This document shows, piece after piece, positions 19,949 to 37,607 of a stretch of DNA of 64,000 bases. The DNA lies in assembly GCA_037379345.1 (NCBI GenBank), contig CM074511.1, positions 16,554,001 through 16,618,000 on the forward strand. Direction: 5' to 3'. How positions within the stretch are numbered: the first letter of the stretch is position 1; each line of letters begins with the position of its first letter. This stretch comes from Perna viridis (taxonomy: Eukaryota). Made by a program: the position numbers and the translations under genes. The notes under the pieces were generated by a model that made no database searches, had not been told where the DNA came from, and saw only the letters and a program-made list of their open reading frames with translations.

Positions 19949-19973
19949 CCGTGATCTTATATTTCTGATGACA

Positions 19974-22465
19974 ATGAAGCTTGTATGTGCTTTACTTGGT
20001 TTCTCTGTAATTGCCGTAAGTTTCACATAAGTTTCGTCTTTTTACAAAGTTTCTTACACTTCAATTTTGAAAACAAACTGTTAAAGCACTTTTTAAGAAT
20101 AAATAAGATATGTTGCAGACCAAAAATTGATCAGTCAAAGTTATTTTAATTATTTTTAAACGTTTAAAGCTCTAAATAATGAATTCATATCGTTATCTAA
20201 GTAATACCTGTTTGCAGATACATGTCTCCAAGGAAAAGAAACATAATTAAAATTCTTCCAAGTAACTTCAGTTATGGAAATAAAGGACTAACTGCATATA
20301 CATGAACGCGCATTAAAATGATCAACCTCCAACTGACAGATGAATTCTCTTCGTATTAATTTTTTTAAACACGAAAAAAAAAAAGAAAAAAACTAGTAAG
20401 TCAATTTTTAGTAAAATATCTTTCCTTTGAGAGTTTTCTATATAATTATTATATATATATAACATGCTAATCTTCACAACAATTTGTCAAAGACAATTGT
20501 GAAGGTTTTCATCATGACTTTTGTAGCGCTTTAATTTGATATGTAAAAACTCTACTTTCTGTGAAATTTATCATTTTTTACACAGGGGCTTGCTCCCACT
20601 ATCAAATATGCAGCCCCACTAGTATATAAAATATACTAGTGGGGATGCATATTTGATAGTGGGCGCAAGCCCCTGTGATTTTGCACTTATTAACCTTACC
20701 CAGATTCTTTCTCCGTAAAACGAAATTCATATTTGTAATGTTATCGTTACGATCTCTCGTTTCACATGCAGCAACTTATAATAAAAAGAAATGCTTAATT
20801 TCCTGCACTCATTGGCCCAATTAAACCCATTTTTGGAGGACAAAACTTCGATATTTCGGATGTACGCTTAAGTCCTTTCATTTGACTGCGTCAACCTTGC
20901 CTTCAAAAACTTTTAATACTTGCACTTAATGACCCATCCCTTTGAACATGTATGAAATGTCAGGTTTGAAACTTGGATTTTTGTAATCCGCTCATTCAGA
21001 TCTTCAAAATGTTACGATATCACATGACCCCCTACGAGGAAGTTGAAAAAAATGCTGTCAAATTATGCAATTTCATAAATAGGTTCCGATGAAATATACA
21101 AGACCATTGCAAAATAGGAAAATTTCAAGTACTTGTAGTTTTGTTGCGTTTCGATATTGCCCCTTGTTATTGTGTCAAACAAATGTACTTGAGCAGATCT
21201 TTCAATCTGGGTAAACATTATTTGTGTATCTGTAAGTTGTGAATTGTGAAATAAATATCGCCGCTCTAAAATACTAAAATTTCAATAGGTCCAAAACAAA
21301 ACATGATATCTTAAATCTGAAAAATGTATGATAATTTAAAAAAAGAACATGTACAACACGTTTACAAAACAAGTTTAGAGCTCGTTTTGGGGGCAATGAA
21401 CAATTGAATTATAATGCAATACAAAACTCCCGAACCGGAAGTCGTAAATGCATGCGACTACCACCGTACACCTTAGGATCAGTTGTCCAGGTCACGGTCA
21501 TACAATCTTGTCATGGTCACAAAATTGATTTCGTGAATCAATTAAATTTTCATGATTTTTGAACAGACGGTCTGACTGATGTAAACTTGGGCTCAAAATG
21601 TAGAGCTTATCGAGAGGGTCACTTCATACCTGCATGTATGCACTTATCTCTATTCAATTTCCATTCTGTGACATTTGACCTTGGGTGCAAATGGAAAGGT
21701 CACATATAATAAAAAGCGCAGGTGAAGGTCCTATGTCTCTACATAGGACTTCCGGTTTTCGGAATATAAGCTTTCAAAAACTGAAGTAAGATATTTCAAG
21801 GGACGTAAGTTTTGATGTATGTTTATTTATGATAATGTCATGTGTCCTTTTACGTGTAACAGTCTATCTTTAGTGGTTTTCAAGATAGAAGCAATTAAAT
21901 TGCTAAAAAAATATTCTTAAAGAAAATGGCGGAATCCTTAGCAGGGTCATCTTCTAATATTACATTGTGACCTCTAATTTTGACTGAATATGTTTGTAAT
22001 ATCCTTTATATGAAAAGGGGGACCATGTTTCTTAAACACAAATTAACTTTATACTCAAAGTAAAAAAGTCAATGAAATGATACATGCATCAAAAAAAAGA
22101 AGGCAGTGTCTTTTGAGTAGGTTTAAGGGTACATTGTTTATGTACGAATTATACATGTATTCTGCATGTATTTAACATTGTAGATTGTAAAATGTCAAAG
22201 TGAATGCACACAAGCTTCTGACTGTAATACAAACGAATGTTGTATGGAACAATCCCAAAGTAAGCGCTTTCTGGATGAAACTTCAAAAGGAATGTGCCGA
22301 GCTAATCGTAAACAATTTCAACAGTGTGACCCATCAGATGCAGTGTCCAGAGACAATCCGAATTTACGAGTAATAGAATGCCCATGTGAATCGGGATATG
22401 CTTGTAAAAGTAACATTGACCCAGCAACGTACAGTAATTCATTCTGTGTTAAAAGTTTTAAATAA
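19974..22465 (+). CDS. Secreted 10-Cys prokineticin/colipase-fold peptide, paralog 1 (107 aa; exons 19974-20015, 22184-22465)
   Basis: Exon 1 MKLVCALLGFSVIA|gtaagt splices in phase 0 to ttgtag|IVKCQSECTQASDCNTNECCMEQSQSKRFLDETSKGMCRANRKQFQQCDPSDAVSRDNPNLRVIECPCESGYACKSNIDPATYSNSFCVKSFK*. The pattern is C-x5-C-x4-CC-x17-C-x9-C-x17-CPC-x5-C-x13-C. AATAAA/ATTAAA lie at the stop. Confidence 0.88.
20581..20677. repeat. Near-perfect 97-bp palindrome (47-bp arms, 3-nt loop), MITE-like with CAC...GTG ends
   Basis: cacaggggcttgctcccactatcaaatatgcagccccactagtatat-aaa-atatactagtggggatgcatatttgatagtgggcgcaagcccctgtg, with two mismatches. Confidence 0.95.
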
Positions 22466-24118
22466 ATCCATTAAAGTGATTTTTTAAGTTCCGTTTCTAG
22501 GTCAAATTTTCTAAATTAAATGTGGATATTTCGAGTACTTATTATATTCAAATGCGAAATGTTTTAAGTTACGATCTCCCCTACAGACATAACAACCACT
22601 TCCTGATTTACTACGAATTACTACGCTTGCTTATTATAGGGACTTTTTGCGACCACAATATCATTTTGTGTGTACAATTTAAATTATGTACAGTGATGTA
22701 TACTAGCTTGCATAAGAAGACGAGTTCAGTACTGAGTATGGCAGAGTTGTTTTAACCTTGCATTAGTCAAAATACTTCCTCGTTTTAACCTTTTGACAAT
22801 GCAGGCCTAATTTCACTTTAGTTTTCCTTGACTTACAGGCAAGCGGGTGCAGCTAGAAAAAAATCAGACTAAGCATGCCCTAGATAGGAAAAAGATACAT
22901 GGGGTTTATGTAAAATGAAAATTGAATAAAAAACAAACTTGATCTGCAGAGCATTTTTTTTCCATTCTGAAAAATTTAACAAAGTGTAACATAGGTATTT
23001 TTCTTCTTTTGGTCAATTTGGTCAACAAGAAGAAAAATACCTATGTTACACTTCATACGGTCCACTCATTTACACAGTTTAAAATCACATTGTCTGTACA
23101 TGTGCCTATTGTTTTTAAGCATGGCATAAGAGCTCACCTTAGTGATTGGAAAACATGTAAAAACGTTTCCATAAGTCTCTGTTTTGGCACTTTCTGCAGA
23201 ATTGGTGAAAATGCGCAGCAAAAATAAGGGTTTTTTTTATCAATTTAGATTGAAGATCAGACGCGAGAGACTACAGCTTTGTAAAGCCTGTTAGCATCTA
23301 AAACCATTTCTTACATCGCCGCGGGAAGAAAAGTTCCACTGACATTCATCATTTAAATTAACAAGAATCCAAATAGAGTCAGTTGAACTCTAACCTCTTA
23401 TCAGTACCAGCTGTTCACGTCGAAGCCAGTCGTTTAGTTGTCTACATATGTTAGACACATATGCCATTTGTAGTTTAACTAGGAAAGCAATCCTATGAGA
23501 TAATACAACATCTAGAGAGATACTGAGTACCAATCGAAAGAGCTACACAGTCTTTGCATTTAACTGTTATGCCGAAAGTATTAATTTTCTACTATATTTA
23601 GCCACAGAAGACGTTCTTATCCCATATCCCTCAGAATGAAAACAATAACAAATAAAAAAAAATAAACAATTAAAACAAAAACAAAACGCCAATTCAAACG
23701 AACCTGACAGTTAGATTGATAACAAATTGTGTACAGATTTTAATCAGAACAGATTCGCCTTATGACATCAGAATATGACAAATAATATATCTGCATGATA
23801 ATAATTTTGATAATGCAATTTTCCAAGGAATGGTGTAAGTCTTCGGTCTGGTGTTTCTGTTATTTGAACTCTCCTATAATCATTCTATTTTTGGTCATTT
23901 TGAAGGGTTTTTATTTAATTGAAATTAAAGGTTTGCTCGGTCCGTGATAAAAATCTACCTCCCTTAACTAAAAGCTTCAGTCAACATGGCCGTAAGTGGA
24001 ATCATTATATATACACCGTAAACGTTCTACTAATGATAACCCAGACCTTATCACTGCAATGACTTTTTCCCCTGCTTTAATTTACATGCAGTATTTATGA
24101 ATGTACAAGTGATTATCA

Positions 24119-26505
24119 ATGGCAATGAACAGCAAATTCTTCTGGTTGTATTTCATGTGTACATTTGTTTCGGTGAGTATTGACTTATGTAAGAAACCAT
24201 TTGATAAAACTACGAGAGCAGCGTTTGTAAAATCAAAGTACGATAGTACTGTTAACTCGGTAATCAATCTAACGCAAGCAAATTACATTTACGTTTTATC
24301 ATTCATAATTTGGTTTAACTTAATTTAAAACAGAACTATTTATACTGGCACTTTATTCTTGTTTGTCTCTTTCTCTGTAAAATGCATAGTGATAATTCCT
24401 ACAAGGGTGTAATAATTATAGCTGACAACAAGTTGAGAATACTTATCATTTAGACTACATATACATGTACTTTATATAAGTTATCCTAATACAAGTATCA
24501 CGACAACCATTTCTTTATACAATAAGATAATAACAGGCAAGTTTGCAATGACGAGGTAATATACTTATAAATGATAGAACAAATAGAGTAAATGTCGTTT
24601 ACTTTCATATTAATATTTTGACAATACCATAATGTTGAACATTTATCAAAATATTCGATATAATATGCAAAATAATTTTATTTATTAATTTAATTACCAC
24701 CCGTGTTGTAACTGAGATCGAGTGGGTACGTAGGGTACATACAAGACACGCCATGCGAAGAGAGGTTGTTTTTAATCACAGTGTAAAGAATGTATTAGGA
24801 TGTTCATAGTTGAAAGAATTAATATTGAATGTGGGTATAGCATGCAAGGCACCAACCTTTTATTTTCACGAGTATCACAGTACATGTACCAAAATCAAAT
24901 CAAGGGAAGAAGACAAATTCATAATCTAGACGTTTTTTTCAGAGCATGTTGAAGACCTTAATGTGACCTCAGGTTGTATTTACTGTTTCAGATTTCAGTT
25001 GTTTTGCGTTTCACTACATTCGTCCCCCACTGCCTACATGTGTAAAATGGATAGATATTAGTTTATAGTGCATCATCTCCAGTTTTCCCATGGTAGAGCA
25101 TAAAACAAGAATAAGATATTTGTAACAAATGTTTTGTTAAAAAAAAGAATTGTCTTGAATCAATACAAAAAGCGATTATTTTTTTCTTCTGATTGTTAGG
25201 AGGTTCTAAATCTAGATATTGATAGGCTTTATTATGCATTTTCTTGATTACAATCGAAAAAAAGTACATTAAAATCGCTGTTTCAGCGTACAAACAAAAG
25301 AGAACTGCTGCACTGCACTCGAACAGTTTTCTTTCGATGGCGGTCAAAGTTTATATATAAGTATATAGTTATAATATCAACGTTAAGATGAAAATGACTT
25401 TGTCTTTGGATAATATTTGGTCGAAATTGACAGTCTTGCGACTTCCGATAAAGAAAATTCTAGAGAACATTATTTGTTAAATTATTTTGACCGAATTGCT
25501 TCTGTTTGATTTAAGAAAAAAATTCCTAAGAATTCTGAGAACAAAGTTTGCTCTTCTTATGCACCTGTATTGCCCATTCAGTTTTAGAGTTCCACTAAGG
25601 CGTATACTCTGCTATAATCTTTTGCACTCATATCGGCATTACATAGGAAAAAGAAATCCGCGATTTGACATGCAATTTTCGTCAAATATTTGTTAACATG
25701 ATCAAAGAAACGTCTATTACACGAACAAAAAATAAGTGGTTAATACATCTAAAAAATAATTGTGCCGTTGCGTTCCTGTGACATCATCGACTGGAAAAAT
25801 GAATTCGTGAAAAACATTCGTTTGTCCAACTCGGGATCACAGTGCTGAATAAAACAATAAACATATGATCAGAGTTTTAGAAAACCATTTGCTATATATC
25901 CATATGTCAAATATGCTCTTCCTGGGAAAAATACCCAACAATGTAACGGAATCTTTTCAATAAAGGTCATTGCCATTAGTGATCATTATTTGTTTACGAC
26001 TTTTATACCATCACAATAAATATAATGTATAAAATTCTATAAGGAACAGGTAGGAATAAACTTGCGCTATTGATCATAAGATGAACAGCACAGAACATAT
26101 TTTACCACCCTTTTTACACAAATTCAAATAAATCGCATTTGATTTAAATAAAAAAATGGCTCAAATTGTGTAAAAAACTTGTCTTACTATATTCAGGTCA
26201 TAAGTCAGCTACAGCAATGTAAGAATTCGTCAGAATGTGGACAAGATGAATGTTGTGTAGAAGAGGACCGTACAAGGCGGTTTTTATTTGAAAGGTCATC
26301 CGGATTCTGCCGCCCCGGTCGAGGTCAAGGTCAAGCCTGTCATGTTTACATGCAACACTCCCTTGGTAACCCAGACATGTATCTTAATTATTGCCCTTGC
26401 GTCGATGGTCTTGTATGCGGGGGAATGTCGGTAGACGGTAAAGTACATCATAACCCAATCTGTATGCCTAGTGATGGAACCACTACATTACCAACTACTG
26501 CATAA
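24119..26505 (+). CDS. Secreted 10-Cys prokineticin/colipase-fold peptide, paralog 2 (120 aa; exons 24119-24172, 26197-26505)
   Basis: Exon 1 MAMNSKFFWLYFMCTFVS|gtgagt splices in phase 0 to attcag|VISQLQQCKNSSECGQDECCVEEDRTRRFLFERSSGFCRPGRGQGQACHVYMQHSLGNPDMYLNYCPCVDGLVCGGMSVDGKVHHNPICMPSDGTTTLPTTA*. It has the same Cys framework as paralog 1. AATAAA lies at about 26531. Confidence 0.88.
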
Positions 26506-26707
26506 GACTAACATATATCTCCCAAGCAACAATAAAGTGATTTTACCTTTTTATCTCTCATTTTGATGAAGTGTTATAATATAGTCGTTCATCTTATCAA
26601 TGAACTGCGATTAAGTACCAGACCTATGAACTCTACATACAGGAAAATCGGTCACATTGATTGTTTCTAGAATTCACACTACGCCAAAATGTCCTATGGA
26701 TCTGGCA

Positions 26708-27024
26708 CCCATGCTTGCAGTTTTGTTTTGAAGGATGCCAGGTTGCCCATTTTTGGTTTCGATACATGTATGTCTTTCATTGTTTCTACTTCTTGACTTT
26801 TGATTTTTCGGACGTCGCTCAGACCGCTGACTTCATTTCGCACAGGATATAAGGAGAATTTAAAACCCATGCTTGCAGTTTTGTTTTGAAGGATGCCAGG
26901 TTGCCCATTTTTGGTTTCGATACATGTATGCCTTTCATTGTTTCTACTTCTTGACTTTTGATTTTTCGGACGTCGCTCAGACCGCTGCCTTCATTTCGCA
27001 CAGGATACAAGGAGAATTTAAAAC
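26708..27024. repeat. Tandem duplication, 158-bp unit x2
   Basis: cccatgcttgcagttttgttttgaaggatgcc...ggagaatttaaaa begins at 26708 and 26866, with only a few substitutions. Confidence 0.95.
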
Positions 27025-27699
27025 TTCAAGGCATCGGCGAATCATGGATTAGCGGCAAACGAAGTTGAATTGTAGACCGAGCTGATGTCGTTACTTTCAA
27101 TCACATGCCACTAAACATTTCAGTTTTAATCACAGAGGCATGTCTATAAACCCTTTCGACTGCGGGACAGTTGATTCATATGTATGAGCTAAACTTTCCC
27201 GAAGTAGGGCTTGGGTAAAACAAAATAATTGTCTGCACGAAAGTGTATATAATTGAACATCCTCACCGACCACCCTGTAATTAGTACAGAAGGGTCGCTA
27301 TTTTTAATATAATCACTCTTTTCACATCCAGGATAGCAGAGCTAATACACTAGTGGGTTATAAAGTGATCATTAAGTTTACGGGAGATTATTTACCGTCA
27401 CGACCAGGGAAGATTTTTCATTAGATACGAAATTGTTTTTGTGTTATCACCCATTTCCGGTCACACTTTAACTCATGTAAAAAACACACCGACTAATTTT
27501 GGGGTAATGTCAGAAAGATTTCCAATAGCACCACATATTTTACCAAAATTGTCATCATTTACATAATTGCCAATGTAGTACAAAGATACGAGTACAAATG
27601 ATATTGATCGGATTATATGTTGTTCCTGATCTAATCTGATCATTTCAGTCATTGAAAGATATTTGCTAAACCCAACGGTTTGGGAGATAATTATATACA

Positions 27700-28069
27700 A
27701 AAATGTACTGACTGACCCCTATGTTCTATTTTTAGTAACAACCGCCCTTTTCTCATCAATCTTAAATCCAAACGGTAATTTTGTTCAGGATACCATAAAA
27801 ACAAAAATACCAACTTTCATTGAATTCTGTATATTAGTTTCTGAGTAGAAGATTTTTGAAAGTAATAACATAAATAAAAAAGCAGATCAAAAATACAAAC
27901 GGGAATTTTGTGCAGGATACTCTAAGAAACAATTCTTTTAAGCTTCAAATCCATTTTCAGTAGTTTCAGAGGAGAAGATGCTTGATGAAATTGTTAACGA
28001 CGAAGACCACGACGACGGACGCCAAGCGATAGCAATAACTCACATGGCCTACGGTCATGTGAGCTAAAA
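27700..28069 (+). mobile_element. Non-autonomous Helentron/HINE (pearl-like) element
   Basis: Two degenerate core repeats (aattttgt..caggatac...tagtttc.gag..agaagat), a GAC-rich tract, and a terminal hairpin ctcacatggcc-tac-ggtcatgtgag (28039-28063) followed by ctaaaa. A similar GAC microsatellite lies at 28295-28328. Confidence 0.65.
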
Positions 28070-28687
28070 CAAAACACTTCAAAATCGGACCAGAAAACAA
28101 AAAAAAAAGAGATGAATTTTGTGGGCGCTGTCGAGTTTCGTACCTTAACTCGAAAACAGTTGAGGATAAGTCTAAAAAAAACTTTCCAGAAATAATAGAA
28201 CCCCGCCATGTCTTATGAACGATATGTTAAAATTCCAAAAAGTACTGACAAGGTTTACCCAAGTTGTCGTAAATAAACGAAAGTTAACAGACGCAAACAA
28301 CGACAACGACGACGACGACGACGACGACTACAGTATGATACAATTATACGTCATAACAAATTTGCAATTGTATAAAATAAGAACAAATATTCATGGGATA
28401 TTTTCCAAAAATGTTAAATTTAGATTTTTTTCGGTAGAGTAGAAATAGATACATCACTCTTTTTCGAAAGTGACCTAAAAGTATTAACTGCAATGGGTAC
28501 GCGCATATAATCATTTCTGAATTTACATTTTTTTTCACGTTTGATGAAGATGATTTACAAAGCTGAAATATAACTTCTATGATTTACTAATACCTTTATT
28601 GCATTAATTAATTGAATATTTGCATTATACAAATACAGAATGCAAAGACAAAAATTCTGCTTACAAAGGCAGGATTTATTCATATTA

Positions 28688-30696
28688 TCAATTGCTTTCC
28701 ATGCTTTGACATTTTGGGTTGATATGTTGAATACTTCCAGGGGTTTCGTGCACCGTCTCCCCTCGGCATTCAAGTTGTTTCTCACACGGACAATGGGTCT
28801 CGTACAGCTCATGGTTAAAAATATCGTGTGTCAGAATAGGCGAACATGTTTCATTCTAAAAAGAATAACGAAGATAAAACCTGGGTTGTTTCGAAAAAAA
28901 GAAAGATAAAGCAAAAATGTCTTTTGTTAATACTCACGAAATAATACTACTAAACTGTGTTATGCAGTCAGACAGTTTATATTATTTGTGCAATCCTAAA
29001 CTTGCTTGACAAGACAGCATGTTTTTGATGATCAGAAAAAAAAAACAGGATCGTAGAAATATTAACGGAATATTCTTTGTTTACATATTAATATGCAGTA
29101 CTTGTGTCAATGCCAAACCGACTTAGTGATGTCACGAGGTAATCGGAAGCTATCGGTAAAATTCAAAGTTTGCGTATGATCAACACTATCTATTCCTTTA
29201 AATACAAGAGTTCTGTAAGATGACTATTCACGTACATCTCAAAGATTTCGAATTTTGGCATAGCTTTATGCTTTTTGCAAAAGCGCATTATTTTACATTT
29301 AACATTATTTATTTTGGTAACGTGTATGATTTTCCATAAGAGACTAAGGCCTTTCTCTTTAACCATATGTTCGCTAATTTACAATTGCTATATTTTTGCA
29401 GATAAGTCGTACCGCATAATTCGTATTTTACCGTGAGAGAAGCATTAACTGTCCGTTGTTATGACATTATTTTAGGCTCTGGCTATGAGGGACGGAAGTG
29501 CATTTGACTTTGTTGATAATAGACCGTTATTTTGTCATATTGCTAATGTCTCGACCAACGGGTATCGGAATTACGTTTTCATGCATGTACAGTACAAGCG
29601 AGACTGGGTGGGTTGTATTAGCTGAAATTTCTTTGATGCTCTTTGGGAGTTTAAGATCAATAAACAATTCAGAAAATTTCACTCCATCCTCACCAAAAAT
29701 TGTTAAACACATACATAAAAATCTGGAATACAGGCATGTTCTACACTTCTAGTCATTAGACATTTTTAAGATGCTCTATTTTGCAAATGATTAAAAGGTA
29801 CATACCATTTGTCTGTAAAACTGACAATGTCCGACATGGTGGAATAAAAATCTTTTGCGCCCCAGGAGACCACCATCGAACAATGAGTGTACACAGCACT
29901 GTCCTTGTGGACAGTCACTCTGGTGGGAGCATGATGGACTCTGGGCCTGAAGTTGAATGAAAAATAATGATAAGCTTTCAGATGATACCCAGTTTGCATA
30001 TGCTGGCTATATCACAAAAAATATACAAGTCACCCTAGGAACTTTGAGGACTACTTTCAGGCATGTGGAAGGGACTGGTTTCCCTTAATAGTGGTATTTT
30101 ACCTTAAGGTTGCTTTTAAATGTACAAAAATTTTGTGTACACTGAAAAAAAAACAGGTGCCAATCGGAAGTGTTCATATTGTGTATGACTTGAAAGTCCG
30201 TCCGATGAAGGAAACAATATCCGGACGCCTTTATTTTCGTTTTTCTCCAAAAATAACCCAAACTGATTAAATTAATCATAAATAAAGATGACAAATGACT
30301 GGGTTATCGACGCATGCAGACACAATCTTCGGCAAATAAAAATATTTCGAAATCGAGTGTTTTTACCCACATTCGGCAATATGGACCCCTGTTTGCAGTA
30401 ATTATTGTTCCAATGTAATGCATAGATGAACTACAAAAAAGGTTTTGATGTCAAAATAAGCAATCATTTAACCAAAAATGTTGAGAATATACTGATTTGG
30501 CTAATAAACTTTCAGGACCGACTTTGATCATAATCGAACATAACCCTCATCAAATTGAAAGTTATTTCAACCTCGTTCTGTCTGCATAACAAAGGTAATT
30601 CGAGTATTGAACTATGGTGAAATAGATTGAATAGAAAGTTGGTGTTCTTACCACTACAGCTACTACAACACACAACAGAACAACACAGAATTTCAT
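28688..30696 (-). CDS. Secreted 10-Cys prokineticin/colipase-fold peptide, paralog 3 (117 aa; exons 30696-30652, 29946-29806, 28855-28688)
   Basis: MKFCVVLLCVVVAVV|gtaaga ... cttcag|AQSPSCSHQSDCPQGQCCVHSLFDGGLLGRKRFLFHHVGHCQFYRQM|gtatgt ... ttttag|NETCSPILTHDIFNHELYETHCPCEKQLECRGETVHETPGSIQHINPKCQSMESN*. All junctions are phase 0, the Cys framework matches paralogs 1 and 2, and AATAAA follows 7 nt after the stop. The ORF track shows exons 2 and 3 in the wrong frames. Confidence 0.9.
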
Positions 30697-36426: not shown

Positions 36427-37607
36427 ATGATGAAAATTTGGTTTATTGTGTTTGTATTCTGTTGTTGCGTCTTGGTGGAAACAGCAGAGACAGACAAGGT
36501 AGGTTATTTGATTTTTCTCGGTAGGTTTTTGAAGTAGTGTTTTGTGAAAATATTTTTTGCTAATAGAACTTACAATGACGCATTTTGTAATGGAGTCATT
36601 TTTTTATACGAAAAGTGCTTGTGGCCTAGGGAAAATCCGAAGTTCGACTAATCAAAGCAGTTTAAGTAAAACATTTTGTCGTAGTAAACAAAAGTGCAAG
36701 ACTACACGGAAATACCCTCTTGTTGCTTAAAGCGGTCTTTGTTGTATTGCTAGCGTATTTACTTATGAGTCACAGTTGGTTCATAACTTTTTTTGCTTTC
36801 ACTTTTTTCACTGTCATTTTGTAGAGTCATATAATTACAAAGAGGGCAGCGGAAGAGCCTACAGACCTACAACTTGAAAACGAGTTAAGGCGAGTAAAGC
36901 GTATAATAGAGCCACAAAATGCTCTATCAAGAGCAAAGCGTATGAAACGACAAAACCATCTTGAAAAAGACCTGTTGAGATTAAAACGCGAGAAAAGATC
37001 CCTTCCAGAACCAGAACTTTCGAGAATGAAACGGGGGAATATAGATGATTCTCCAGAATTGTCAAGAGTTAAACGTTTTAATGATCTCAAGGCTAATATT
37101 GCTACACTAGTGCGAGTAAAAAGACTAAGACGATCGGTTCTAAATTCAATGAGAGCGTTGGATGAGCCTGATTTGGCGCGCGTGAAACGCATGAAGAGAT
37201 CTATAAACCCAATGGATTTCGCTATGCCTACATTATATAGGATGAAACGTAATCATGATCGAAACGCTATTGAATTATCTCGAGTTAAACGAATGAAGAG
37301 ATCAGCAGCCATGATGAAACGGATACCCCCAGACCTTCACAAATTAAAGAGACTGCGCAACAGAAATTTGGAAAAAGCGGCAAATGCTAAAAGAGCACAT
37401 TTTAAGGCAATGAAAGGATATTCCGCAAGAAACAAAGACTTTCACAAACGAGGAAATCATTCTAGAAATGTCGAAAGTTTTAAGCAACGTGTACAAAATA
37501 GACTACGTTCCAGACACAGAAAAAGACTCAGCCATAGAAAACAGAAAGCAAAGAACGACAAACATCACGTACAAAGTCACAGACTTAACAAGAAAAGTTT
37601 GATTTAA
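36427..37607 (+). CDS. Secreted multi-copy peptide precursor, LXRX-neuropeptide-like (284 aa; exons 36427-36498, 36825-37607)
   Basis: Signal peptide MMKIWFIVFVFCCCVLVETA...TDK|gtaggt splices in phase 0 to ttgtag|SHIITKRAAEEPTDLQLENELRRVKR..., in frame with ORF 36942-37607. Ten repeats follow: LRRVKR, LSRAKR, LLRLKR, LSRMKR, LSRVKR, LVRVKR, LARVKR, LYRMKR, LSRVKR, LHKLKR. The C-terminal tail is rich in Arg, Lys and His. Confidence 0.85.

Follow-up and report, generated by a model that had tools for sequence, protein, structure and literature searches.

Are the prokineticin-like peptides of molluscs cut in two inside their disulfide-bonded domain? The question is raised by a stretch of Perna viridis DNA (GenBank assembly GCA_037379345.1, contig CM074511.1, positions 16,554,001 to 16,618,000 of the forward strand; the whole of these 64,000 nucleotides is called the window below), which holds three intact spliced genes for secreted proteins with ten cysteines (Cys), here named A and B (plus strand) and C (minus strand). 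An initial annotation, made from the letters of the window, had described a common cysteine framework and, in the loop between the fourth and fifth cysteines (C4-C5), a basic pair followed by Phe-Leu; it proposed that cleavage at this pair activates a two-chain ligand. Six-frame translation of the window agrees with the description. Exactly three frames pair the C-x5-C-x4-CC framework with (K/R)R-F-L, and the complete spacing is C-x5-C-x4-CC-x17/22-C-x9-C-x17-CPC-x5-C-x13/14/18-C, with x17 between CC and C5 in A and B and x22 in C. The sites between C4 and C5 read QSKR|FLD in A, RTRR|FLF in B (a strict furin motif) and GRKR|FLF in C; all are of convertase type, with Phe at P1', the first position after the presumptive cut.

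To what extent is this site a property of the family rather than of one locus? We examined 87 complete homologous domains from molluscs, annelids, a brachiopod and a rotifer. The initial annotation had held that its proposal would fall if the motif were not kept in orthologs; a basic pair is present in the C4-C5 loop of 75 of these domains. When the non-Cys residues of each whole domain were shuffled, 18.4 ± 3.6 domains had such a pair (maximum 32), and shuffling within the loop gave 40 ± 3.8 (maximum 53). Other loops of comparable length have a basic pair in merely 4-6 domains. The residue immediately ahead of the basic run is Gly in 57 domains, against 7.3 expected. We conclude that the C4-C5 basic pair exceeds chance.

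The residues around the pair were analysed at 83 sites. P1 is Arg in 74/83 and P2 is Lys in 61/83, and Pro is never found at P1' (0/83), though it makes up 5% of loop residues. P1' itself varies across the family (F, Q, A, S, G and others; where two basic runs were of equal length the first was taken, so that some of the Gly counts at P1' are artefactual). The sole common feature after the basic pair is an aliphatic P2', which is L, I or V at 50 of the 83 sites, and strongly hydrophobic P1'-P3' residues, F-[L/I]-F, belong to the window's subfamily. Between CC and the site there are 4 to 18 residues, and between the site and C5 there are 2 to 19; a linear recognition motif therefore fits these data better than a fixed three-dimensional epitope. 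The (K/R)R-F-L of the window is thus a local variant of a site that runs through the family, approximately [G]-[K/R]-R followed by x-[L/I/V], placed in an enlarged C4-C5 loop of variable length.

The site occurs in bivalves, gastropods, annelids, the brachiopod Lingula and a rotifer. It was not found in the homologs from spiders, a scorpion, krill and Daphnia, nor in Bv8 and MIT1; the loops of the arthropod proteins, Bv8 and MIT1 are shorter. In the AlphaFold model of gene B, the site falls within residues 23-35, which are free of secondary structure and overlap block 21-30, the 10-residue block with the lowest mean predicted local distance difference test score (pLDDT) in the domain (70). A separate case is the Platynereis prokineticin precursor, where the C4-C5 loop is short and has no dibasic site, and where two x-L-F-V-G-K-R amidation units ahead of the domain supply this kind of signal elsewhere in the precursor (PMC3890597 supplement).

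To which family do A, B and C belong? Against Pfam, the second exon of B matches PF06607 (Prokineticin) at 17 bits, under the gathering cut-off of 21.6, that of A has no match, and exon 3 of C matches Colipase_C at 17.1, under the cut-off of 23.7 (gene C was compared exon by exon). Scores below threshold for single exons therefore indicate divergent members, detectable only by profile. A word-indexed search with B exon 2 returned zero homologs, and one with a 49-sequence alignment only 4 proteins; a full HMMER search proved necessary and, with a profile built from four paralogs, recovered 74 proteins at E ≤ 1e-3 among 1.84 billion. The named homologs include bivalve (Crassostrea, Ostrea, Dreissena, Mizuhopecten, Solemya) and gastropod proteins (Patella, Lottia, Haliotis, Aplysia, Elysia, Lymnaea, Gigantopelta, Batillaria, Pomacea), together with the annelids Lamellibrachia and Owenia, the brachiopod Lingula and the rotifer Seison. 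Weaker matches came from spiders, a scorpion, krill and Daphnia, with arthropod E values from 1e-5 to 1e-3. The homologs are annotated as 'Prokineticin domain-containing protein', 'prokineticin Bm8-f-like', 'venom protein 164-like', 'toxin CSTX-20-like' or astakine-like.

The fold assigned by the initial annotation, prokineticin/colipase, is borne out at two levels. Compared with the Protein Data Bank, the 49-sequence profile matches Bv8 (6.2e-9), MIT1 (2.9e-8), Dkk1 (7e-6) and colipase (3.5e-4), and also a spider MIT-like toxin and Dkk2. The fold was modelled on B exon 2 (AlphaFold, AF2; pLDDT 83), and the top 10 Foldseek matches of this model are all of the colipase fold (Dkk, MIT1, Bv8, colipase, spider MIT-like toxin). 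Its VIA Z scores were 7.3 with Dkk1 CRD2, 7.0 with MIT1 and 7.0 with the third of the top three, values that the tool places in a middling range. Dickkopf identity was ruled out, as each protein has a single domain and no CRD1. The products of exon 2 start with IVKC (A), VISQ (B) and AQSP (C); none resembles AVITGA, as had been stated for the AVIT motif, and the three proteins are therefore not to be filed as PKR1/PKR2 agonists. A signal peptide followed by an AVIT-less prokineticin domain is also the astakine-type arrangement. Proteins of this kind are already well documented from molluscs and from protostomes more broadly (PMC8398477, PMC6425005): five oyster Cragi-prokineticins lack AVITGA (PMC8398477), and prokineticin-like peptides occur in nearly all lophotrochozoan phyla (PMC6425005). 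We conclude that A, B and C are new members of a known family of AVIT-less spiralian prokineticin-like/astakine-like proteins with the colipase/MIT1 fold.

What, then, might the conserved site do? Sites with K/R-R after a Gly, an aliphatic residue at P2' and any residue but Pro at P1' are the hallmark of processing by prohormone convertases and furin, with amidation where the Gly is present. The site would most likely be recognised by a protease of the furin/prohormone-convertase type in the secretory pathway. The cut would yield an N chain (Cys1 to Cys4) and a C chain (Cys5 to Cys10), held together by the C2-C5 and C3-C7 disulfides; the N chain could then be amidated at its C terminus where a Gly stands ahead of the basic run, as it does in gene C and in the majority of the family. 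The disulfide map behind this topology (C1-C4, C2-C5, C3-C7, C6-C9, C8-C10) comes from experiments on MIT1 and on the spider protein CsTx-20, which lacks AVIT (PMC6468893). We assume it for A, B and C by homology; given that map, C2-C5 and C3-C7 would still join the products of a cut between Cys4 and Cys5, so that the topology drawn by the initial annotation stands. Proteolytic processing has a precedent in the family, the conversion of PK2L to PK2beta (PMC8877203). From the signature and its conservation we infer cleavage, a two-chain product and whatever effect these have on activity, and we are evenly balanced in our judgement that convertases do cut the site into a two-chain, disulfide-linked form.

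The strongest competitor is that the basic pair and the hydrophobic residues after it form an uncleaved surface epitope on the C4-C5 loop, binding a receptor, glycosaminoglycans or a membrane, and that the proteins remain single chains, as their characterised relatives all do. Several observations weigh against cleavage and, in part, favour this alternative. Genes A and C have no Arg at P4 and are not strict furin sites, and the sequences behind our site statistics are related and hence non-independent. Bv8 has a G-K-R in its C6-C7 loop, and we take it to have been purified as a single chain from frog skin, a tissue rich in convertases; since this G-K-R is apparently uncut, a dibasic pair in a loop of the colipase fold need not be cut. 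CsTx-20 is likewise a single chain, of 9.9 kDa (PMC6468893). In vertebrate prokineticins receptor binding depends crucially on Trp24, which is exposed on the C4-C5 loop, and heparin is bound through basic clusters (PMC8877203); a conserved basic-hydrophobic patch on this loop could therefore be a binding surface. The hydrophobic P1'-P3' residues of the window's subfamily are not demanded by cleavage alone. Finally, neither a two-chain form or internal cleavage of any astakine/prokineticin-like protein (open literature; subscription papers lay outside the search) nor cleavage products of proteins like A, B and C (literature searched) were found.

An epitope of this kind fits less well with the site itself. 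Its position in the loop varies widely, the residues downstream differ between family members although K/R-R and the Gly before it persist, G-K-R without Pro at P1' is the classic signature of processing and amidation, and the arthropod and vertebrate relatives do without the motif. We therefore regard an uncleaved epitope as unlikely, though not markedly so.

A second alternative accepts the cut and assigns it to inactivation, turnover or the release of a small product, in place of ligand activation through a new hydrophobic N terminus. The variability of P1' speaks for it. So does the receptor side: prokineticin-receptor orthologs are reported missing from protostomes (PMC8398477, PMC8557429), and protostome prokineticin-like peptides are listed as orphan ligands, there being no prokineticin G-protein-coupled receptor in protostomes (PMC8557429). 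The separate x-L-F-V-G-K-R peptides of the Platynereis precursor (PMC3890597 supplement) indicate that precursors of this family can be sources of peptides. Yet two interchain disulfides would hold the pieces together, with no release unless they were reduced, and conservation over many paralogs and phyla suggests that the cut form is functional. Inactivation or release thus appears improbable. Last, mere inheritance of a functionless motif among recent paralogs, which the 30-35% identity of five clearly tandem-duplicated local paralogs might suggest, is scarcely credible, as adjacent loop residues and loop length change whereas the site persists, both in distantly related phyla and in paralogs located on other chromosomes.

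Convertase cleavage to a two-chain form hence remains our preferred reading, and one part of the original proposal is weakened within it. The initial annotation had seen the new N terminus F-L-(F/D) as an unmasked pharmacophore. With P1' varying across the family, an aliphatic P2' as its only common feature and no reported prokineticin receptor in protostomes (PMC8398477, PMC8557429), an F-L-F terminus would be specific to the window's subfamily, and the pharmacophore idea does not appear to generalise. More tentatively, and with some hesitation, one might see the spiralian prokineticin-domain proteins at large as convertase-nicked, two-chain ligands of the colipase fold, mostly with an amidated N chain, in which the nick was an ancient spiralian innovation that replaced the AVIT-dependent receptor engagement of vertebrates.

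Cleavage of this general kind is familiar from other systems. In insulin/relaxin-type peptides and in two-chain spider toxins such as omega-agatoxin IA, a disulfide-bonded precursor is cleaved at basic sites and the chains stay linked; the folds are unrelated, and the connecting peptide is usually excised, in contrast to the single nicked and trimmed site proposed for A, B and C. Procolipase also has the colipase fold and matures through a tryptic cut after Arg, but that cut removes an N-terminal pentapeptide and is not a nick within a loop. The two-chain spider toxins are discussed in PMC6468893. Like the proteins described here, PK2L is a prokineticin-family protein with an internal basic insert, processed to a form of different receptor selectivity (PMC8877203); its insert is a vertebrate-specific alternative exon elsewhere in the molecule, and the product is shortened, not two-chain.

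Among relatives by descent, the lophotrochozoan prokineticin-like/astakine-like proteins, including the five Cragi-prokineticins and CgAstakine of the Pacific oyster, share with A, B and C the signal peptide, one 10-Cys domain, the lack of AVIT and membership of multigene families. Proteins of oyster, Dreissena, Haliotis and Patella are the best database matches to the A/B/C family and have the same (K/R)R-F-[I/L]-F loop; there is no difference in kind. Vertebrate prokineticins, Bv8 and MIT1 (the AVIT family, PF06607) have the fold and the cysteine framework in common with A, B and C, and their C4-C5 loop, with Trp24, is a functional hot spot in vertebrates (PMC8877203). Compared with Bv8 and MIT1, the spiralian proteins lack AVITGA and have a C4-C5 loop about 6-11 residues longer, with the dibasic site. 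Arthropod astakines, CsTx-20 and the MIT-like atracotoxins are AVIT-less proteins of the colipase fold, as are A, B and C, but the arthropod matches are without the dibasic loop site.

The family itself and the absence of AVIT are already known. Papers on the lophotrochozoan family describe single Cys-rich peptides and do not discuss an internal site (PMC8398477, PMC6425005). The oyster paper does colour predicted convertase sites in the precursors (PMC8398477, Figure 2 legend), and neither its text nor the other searchable papers discuss an internal site or a two-chain product (subscription papers were outside the search). The family-wide, spiralian-restricted conservation of the C4-C5 site and its amidation-type (G-K-R) form thus appear to be new, as judged from the papers searched.

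Proteins of the prokineticin/astakine-like kind occur widely among protostomes, with links to hematopoiesis and to neuroendocrine signalling, and conservation of the site yields a specific, testable prediction. If it is processed, the mature molecule would be a two-chain, often amidated species, and single-chain recombinants used in assays, as well as peptidomic searches for intact peptides, would address the wrong molecule. A two-chain ligand, if true, would help to identify the spiralian receptor. Should the site be uncut, it would still mark a conserved functional patch on the loop that bears the receptor-critical Trp24 in vertebrates.

Are the three genes real and expressed? The window is AT-rich (GC about 0.32) with zero N runs. 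The introns of A, B and C are all GT..AG and phase 0, and gene C has an additional phase-0 intron that separates Cys5 from Cys6. The features are as follows.

19968..20015, plus strand: gene A exon 1, signal peptide; ATGs at 19968 and, in frame, at 19974; donor GTAAGT; predicted splice.
22184..22465, plus strand: gene A exon 2, the whole Cys-rich domain (11 Cys) and stop; acceptor TTGTAG; aligns with the paralogs.
22262..22267, plus strand: gene A Lys-Arg codons in the C4-C5 loop, context QSKR|FLD.
24119..24172, plus strand: gene B candidate exon 1, hydrophobic leader; donor GTGAGT, phase 0; predicted only, without depth in run X5.
26197..26505, plus strand: gene B exon 2, complete 10-Cys domain and stop; acceptor ATTCAG; X5 contig coverage; AlphaFold model.
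26269..26280, plus strand: gene B multibasic R-T-R-R (furin-type R-x-R-R), followed by F-L-F.
30652..30696, minus strand: gene C exon 1, signal peptide; ATG at 30696; donor GTAAGA; matched by a loose end of the X5 contig.
29806..29946, minus strand: gene C exon 2, Cys1 to Cys5 including the C4-C5 loop; X5 contig across the joint 29806|28855.
29851..29856, minus strand: gene C Lys-Arg codons, context GRKR|FLF, with Gly ahead of the basic run.
28688..28855, minus strand: gene C exon 3, Cys6 to Cys10 and stop; acceptor TTTTAG; weak Colipase_C match; spliced contig coverage.

Coordinate 19974 is thus an ATG of the signal-peptide exon of gene A, and 30696 the minus-strand ATG of gene C. The joining of exons 1 and 2 in gene A is inferred from canonical splice sites and from the likeness of its hydrophobic leader to that of exon 1 of an upstream paralog (L004). 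A public assembly holds an open reading frame (ORF) near-identical to gene A exon 2 (P0002); a search for contigs encoding it gave no splice information, the sole contig being 840 nt long with low coverage.

Transcript reads and contigs were compared with positions 24050-30049, which cover genes B and C. For gene C, a contig of the public run X5, at a depth of about 1968, links 29806 directly to 28855; the 950 bases left out between them have GT..AG ends on the minus strand, and at 29947 the loose end of the contig matches exon 1 in reverse complement. Gene C is therefore spliced as predicted across all three exons, in line with the spliced transcripts that the initial annotation had called for, and exon 2 of gene B is well covered in the same run: an X5 contig spans 26273-26526 at a depth of about 322, against 1-5 in the flanks. 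No junction between exons 1 and 2 of gene B was seen in run X5. The sole well-covered contig of this gene begins at 26273, beside the RTRR codons, and there is almost no depth over the predicted exon 1 or over the opening 76 bases of exon 2; the start at 26273 is probably a break in the contig graph.

Three raw RNA sequencing (RNA-seq) runs (X21-X23) gave no reads on B or C, which shows only non-expression in those samples; set against the X5 coverage, expression is therefore sample-dependent. In X21-X23 the depth comes from dispersed repeats: most of it falls at 27650-28050, and weaker signals lie near 28850-29250 and 29850-30049. RNA reads cover 27650-28050 heavily in every run, and loose ends and non-canonical 'joints' are numerous there. 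The region looks like a dispersed repeat with transcribed copies in other parts of the genome, and unlike an exon of either gene. Pseudogenes and chance ORFs were ruled out by the intact frames, the canonical splice sites, the spliced contig of gene C and the deep exon coverage of gene B.

How large is the family in this genome? The initial annotation was right in seeing three divergent paralogs in the window and fell short of the family as a whole. The local cluster has five paralogs, with two extra genes 15 and 22 kb upstream of the window whose sites are RKR|LIFGD and RKR|LILGD. At least nine more (L006, L012, L013, L015-L019, L021) lie in small clusters on three other contigs, and all nine have a dibasic or multibasic C4-C5 site, for example GKR, GRRKR or GRKRR. 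Such a site is carried by 14/14 of the family members found in the genome. In the nine off-cluster paralogs the intron mostly follows Cys5 or Cys6 (it precedes Cys5 in L006), and the sites resemble P-I-G-K-R or G-R-(R)-K-R(-R).

Besides the ten framework cysteines of the initial annotation, gene A has an eleventh. The extra Cys stands just past the predicted signal peptide (22184-22195, IVKC), as it does in the upstream paralog L003 (1495-1506, ISC); the resulting odd count might permit covalent dimers or a free thiol.

Other elements of the window lie near these genes. Between genes B and C is a tandem repeat at 26707-27024, a 158-bp unit present twice at 98% identity, and an (ACG)n trinucleotide microsatellite at 28300-28328 gives a poly-Asp run in one frame. 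Further downstream, at 36427-37607, a neighbouring entry of the initial annotation reports ten L-x-(R/K)-x-KR units in one precursor; PMC8398477 lists LXRX among the neuropeptide precursor types of lophotrochozoans.

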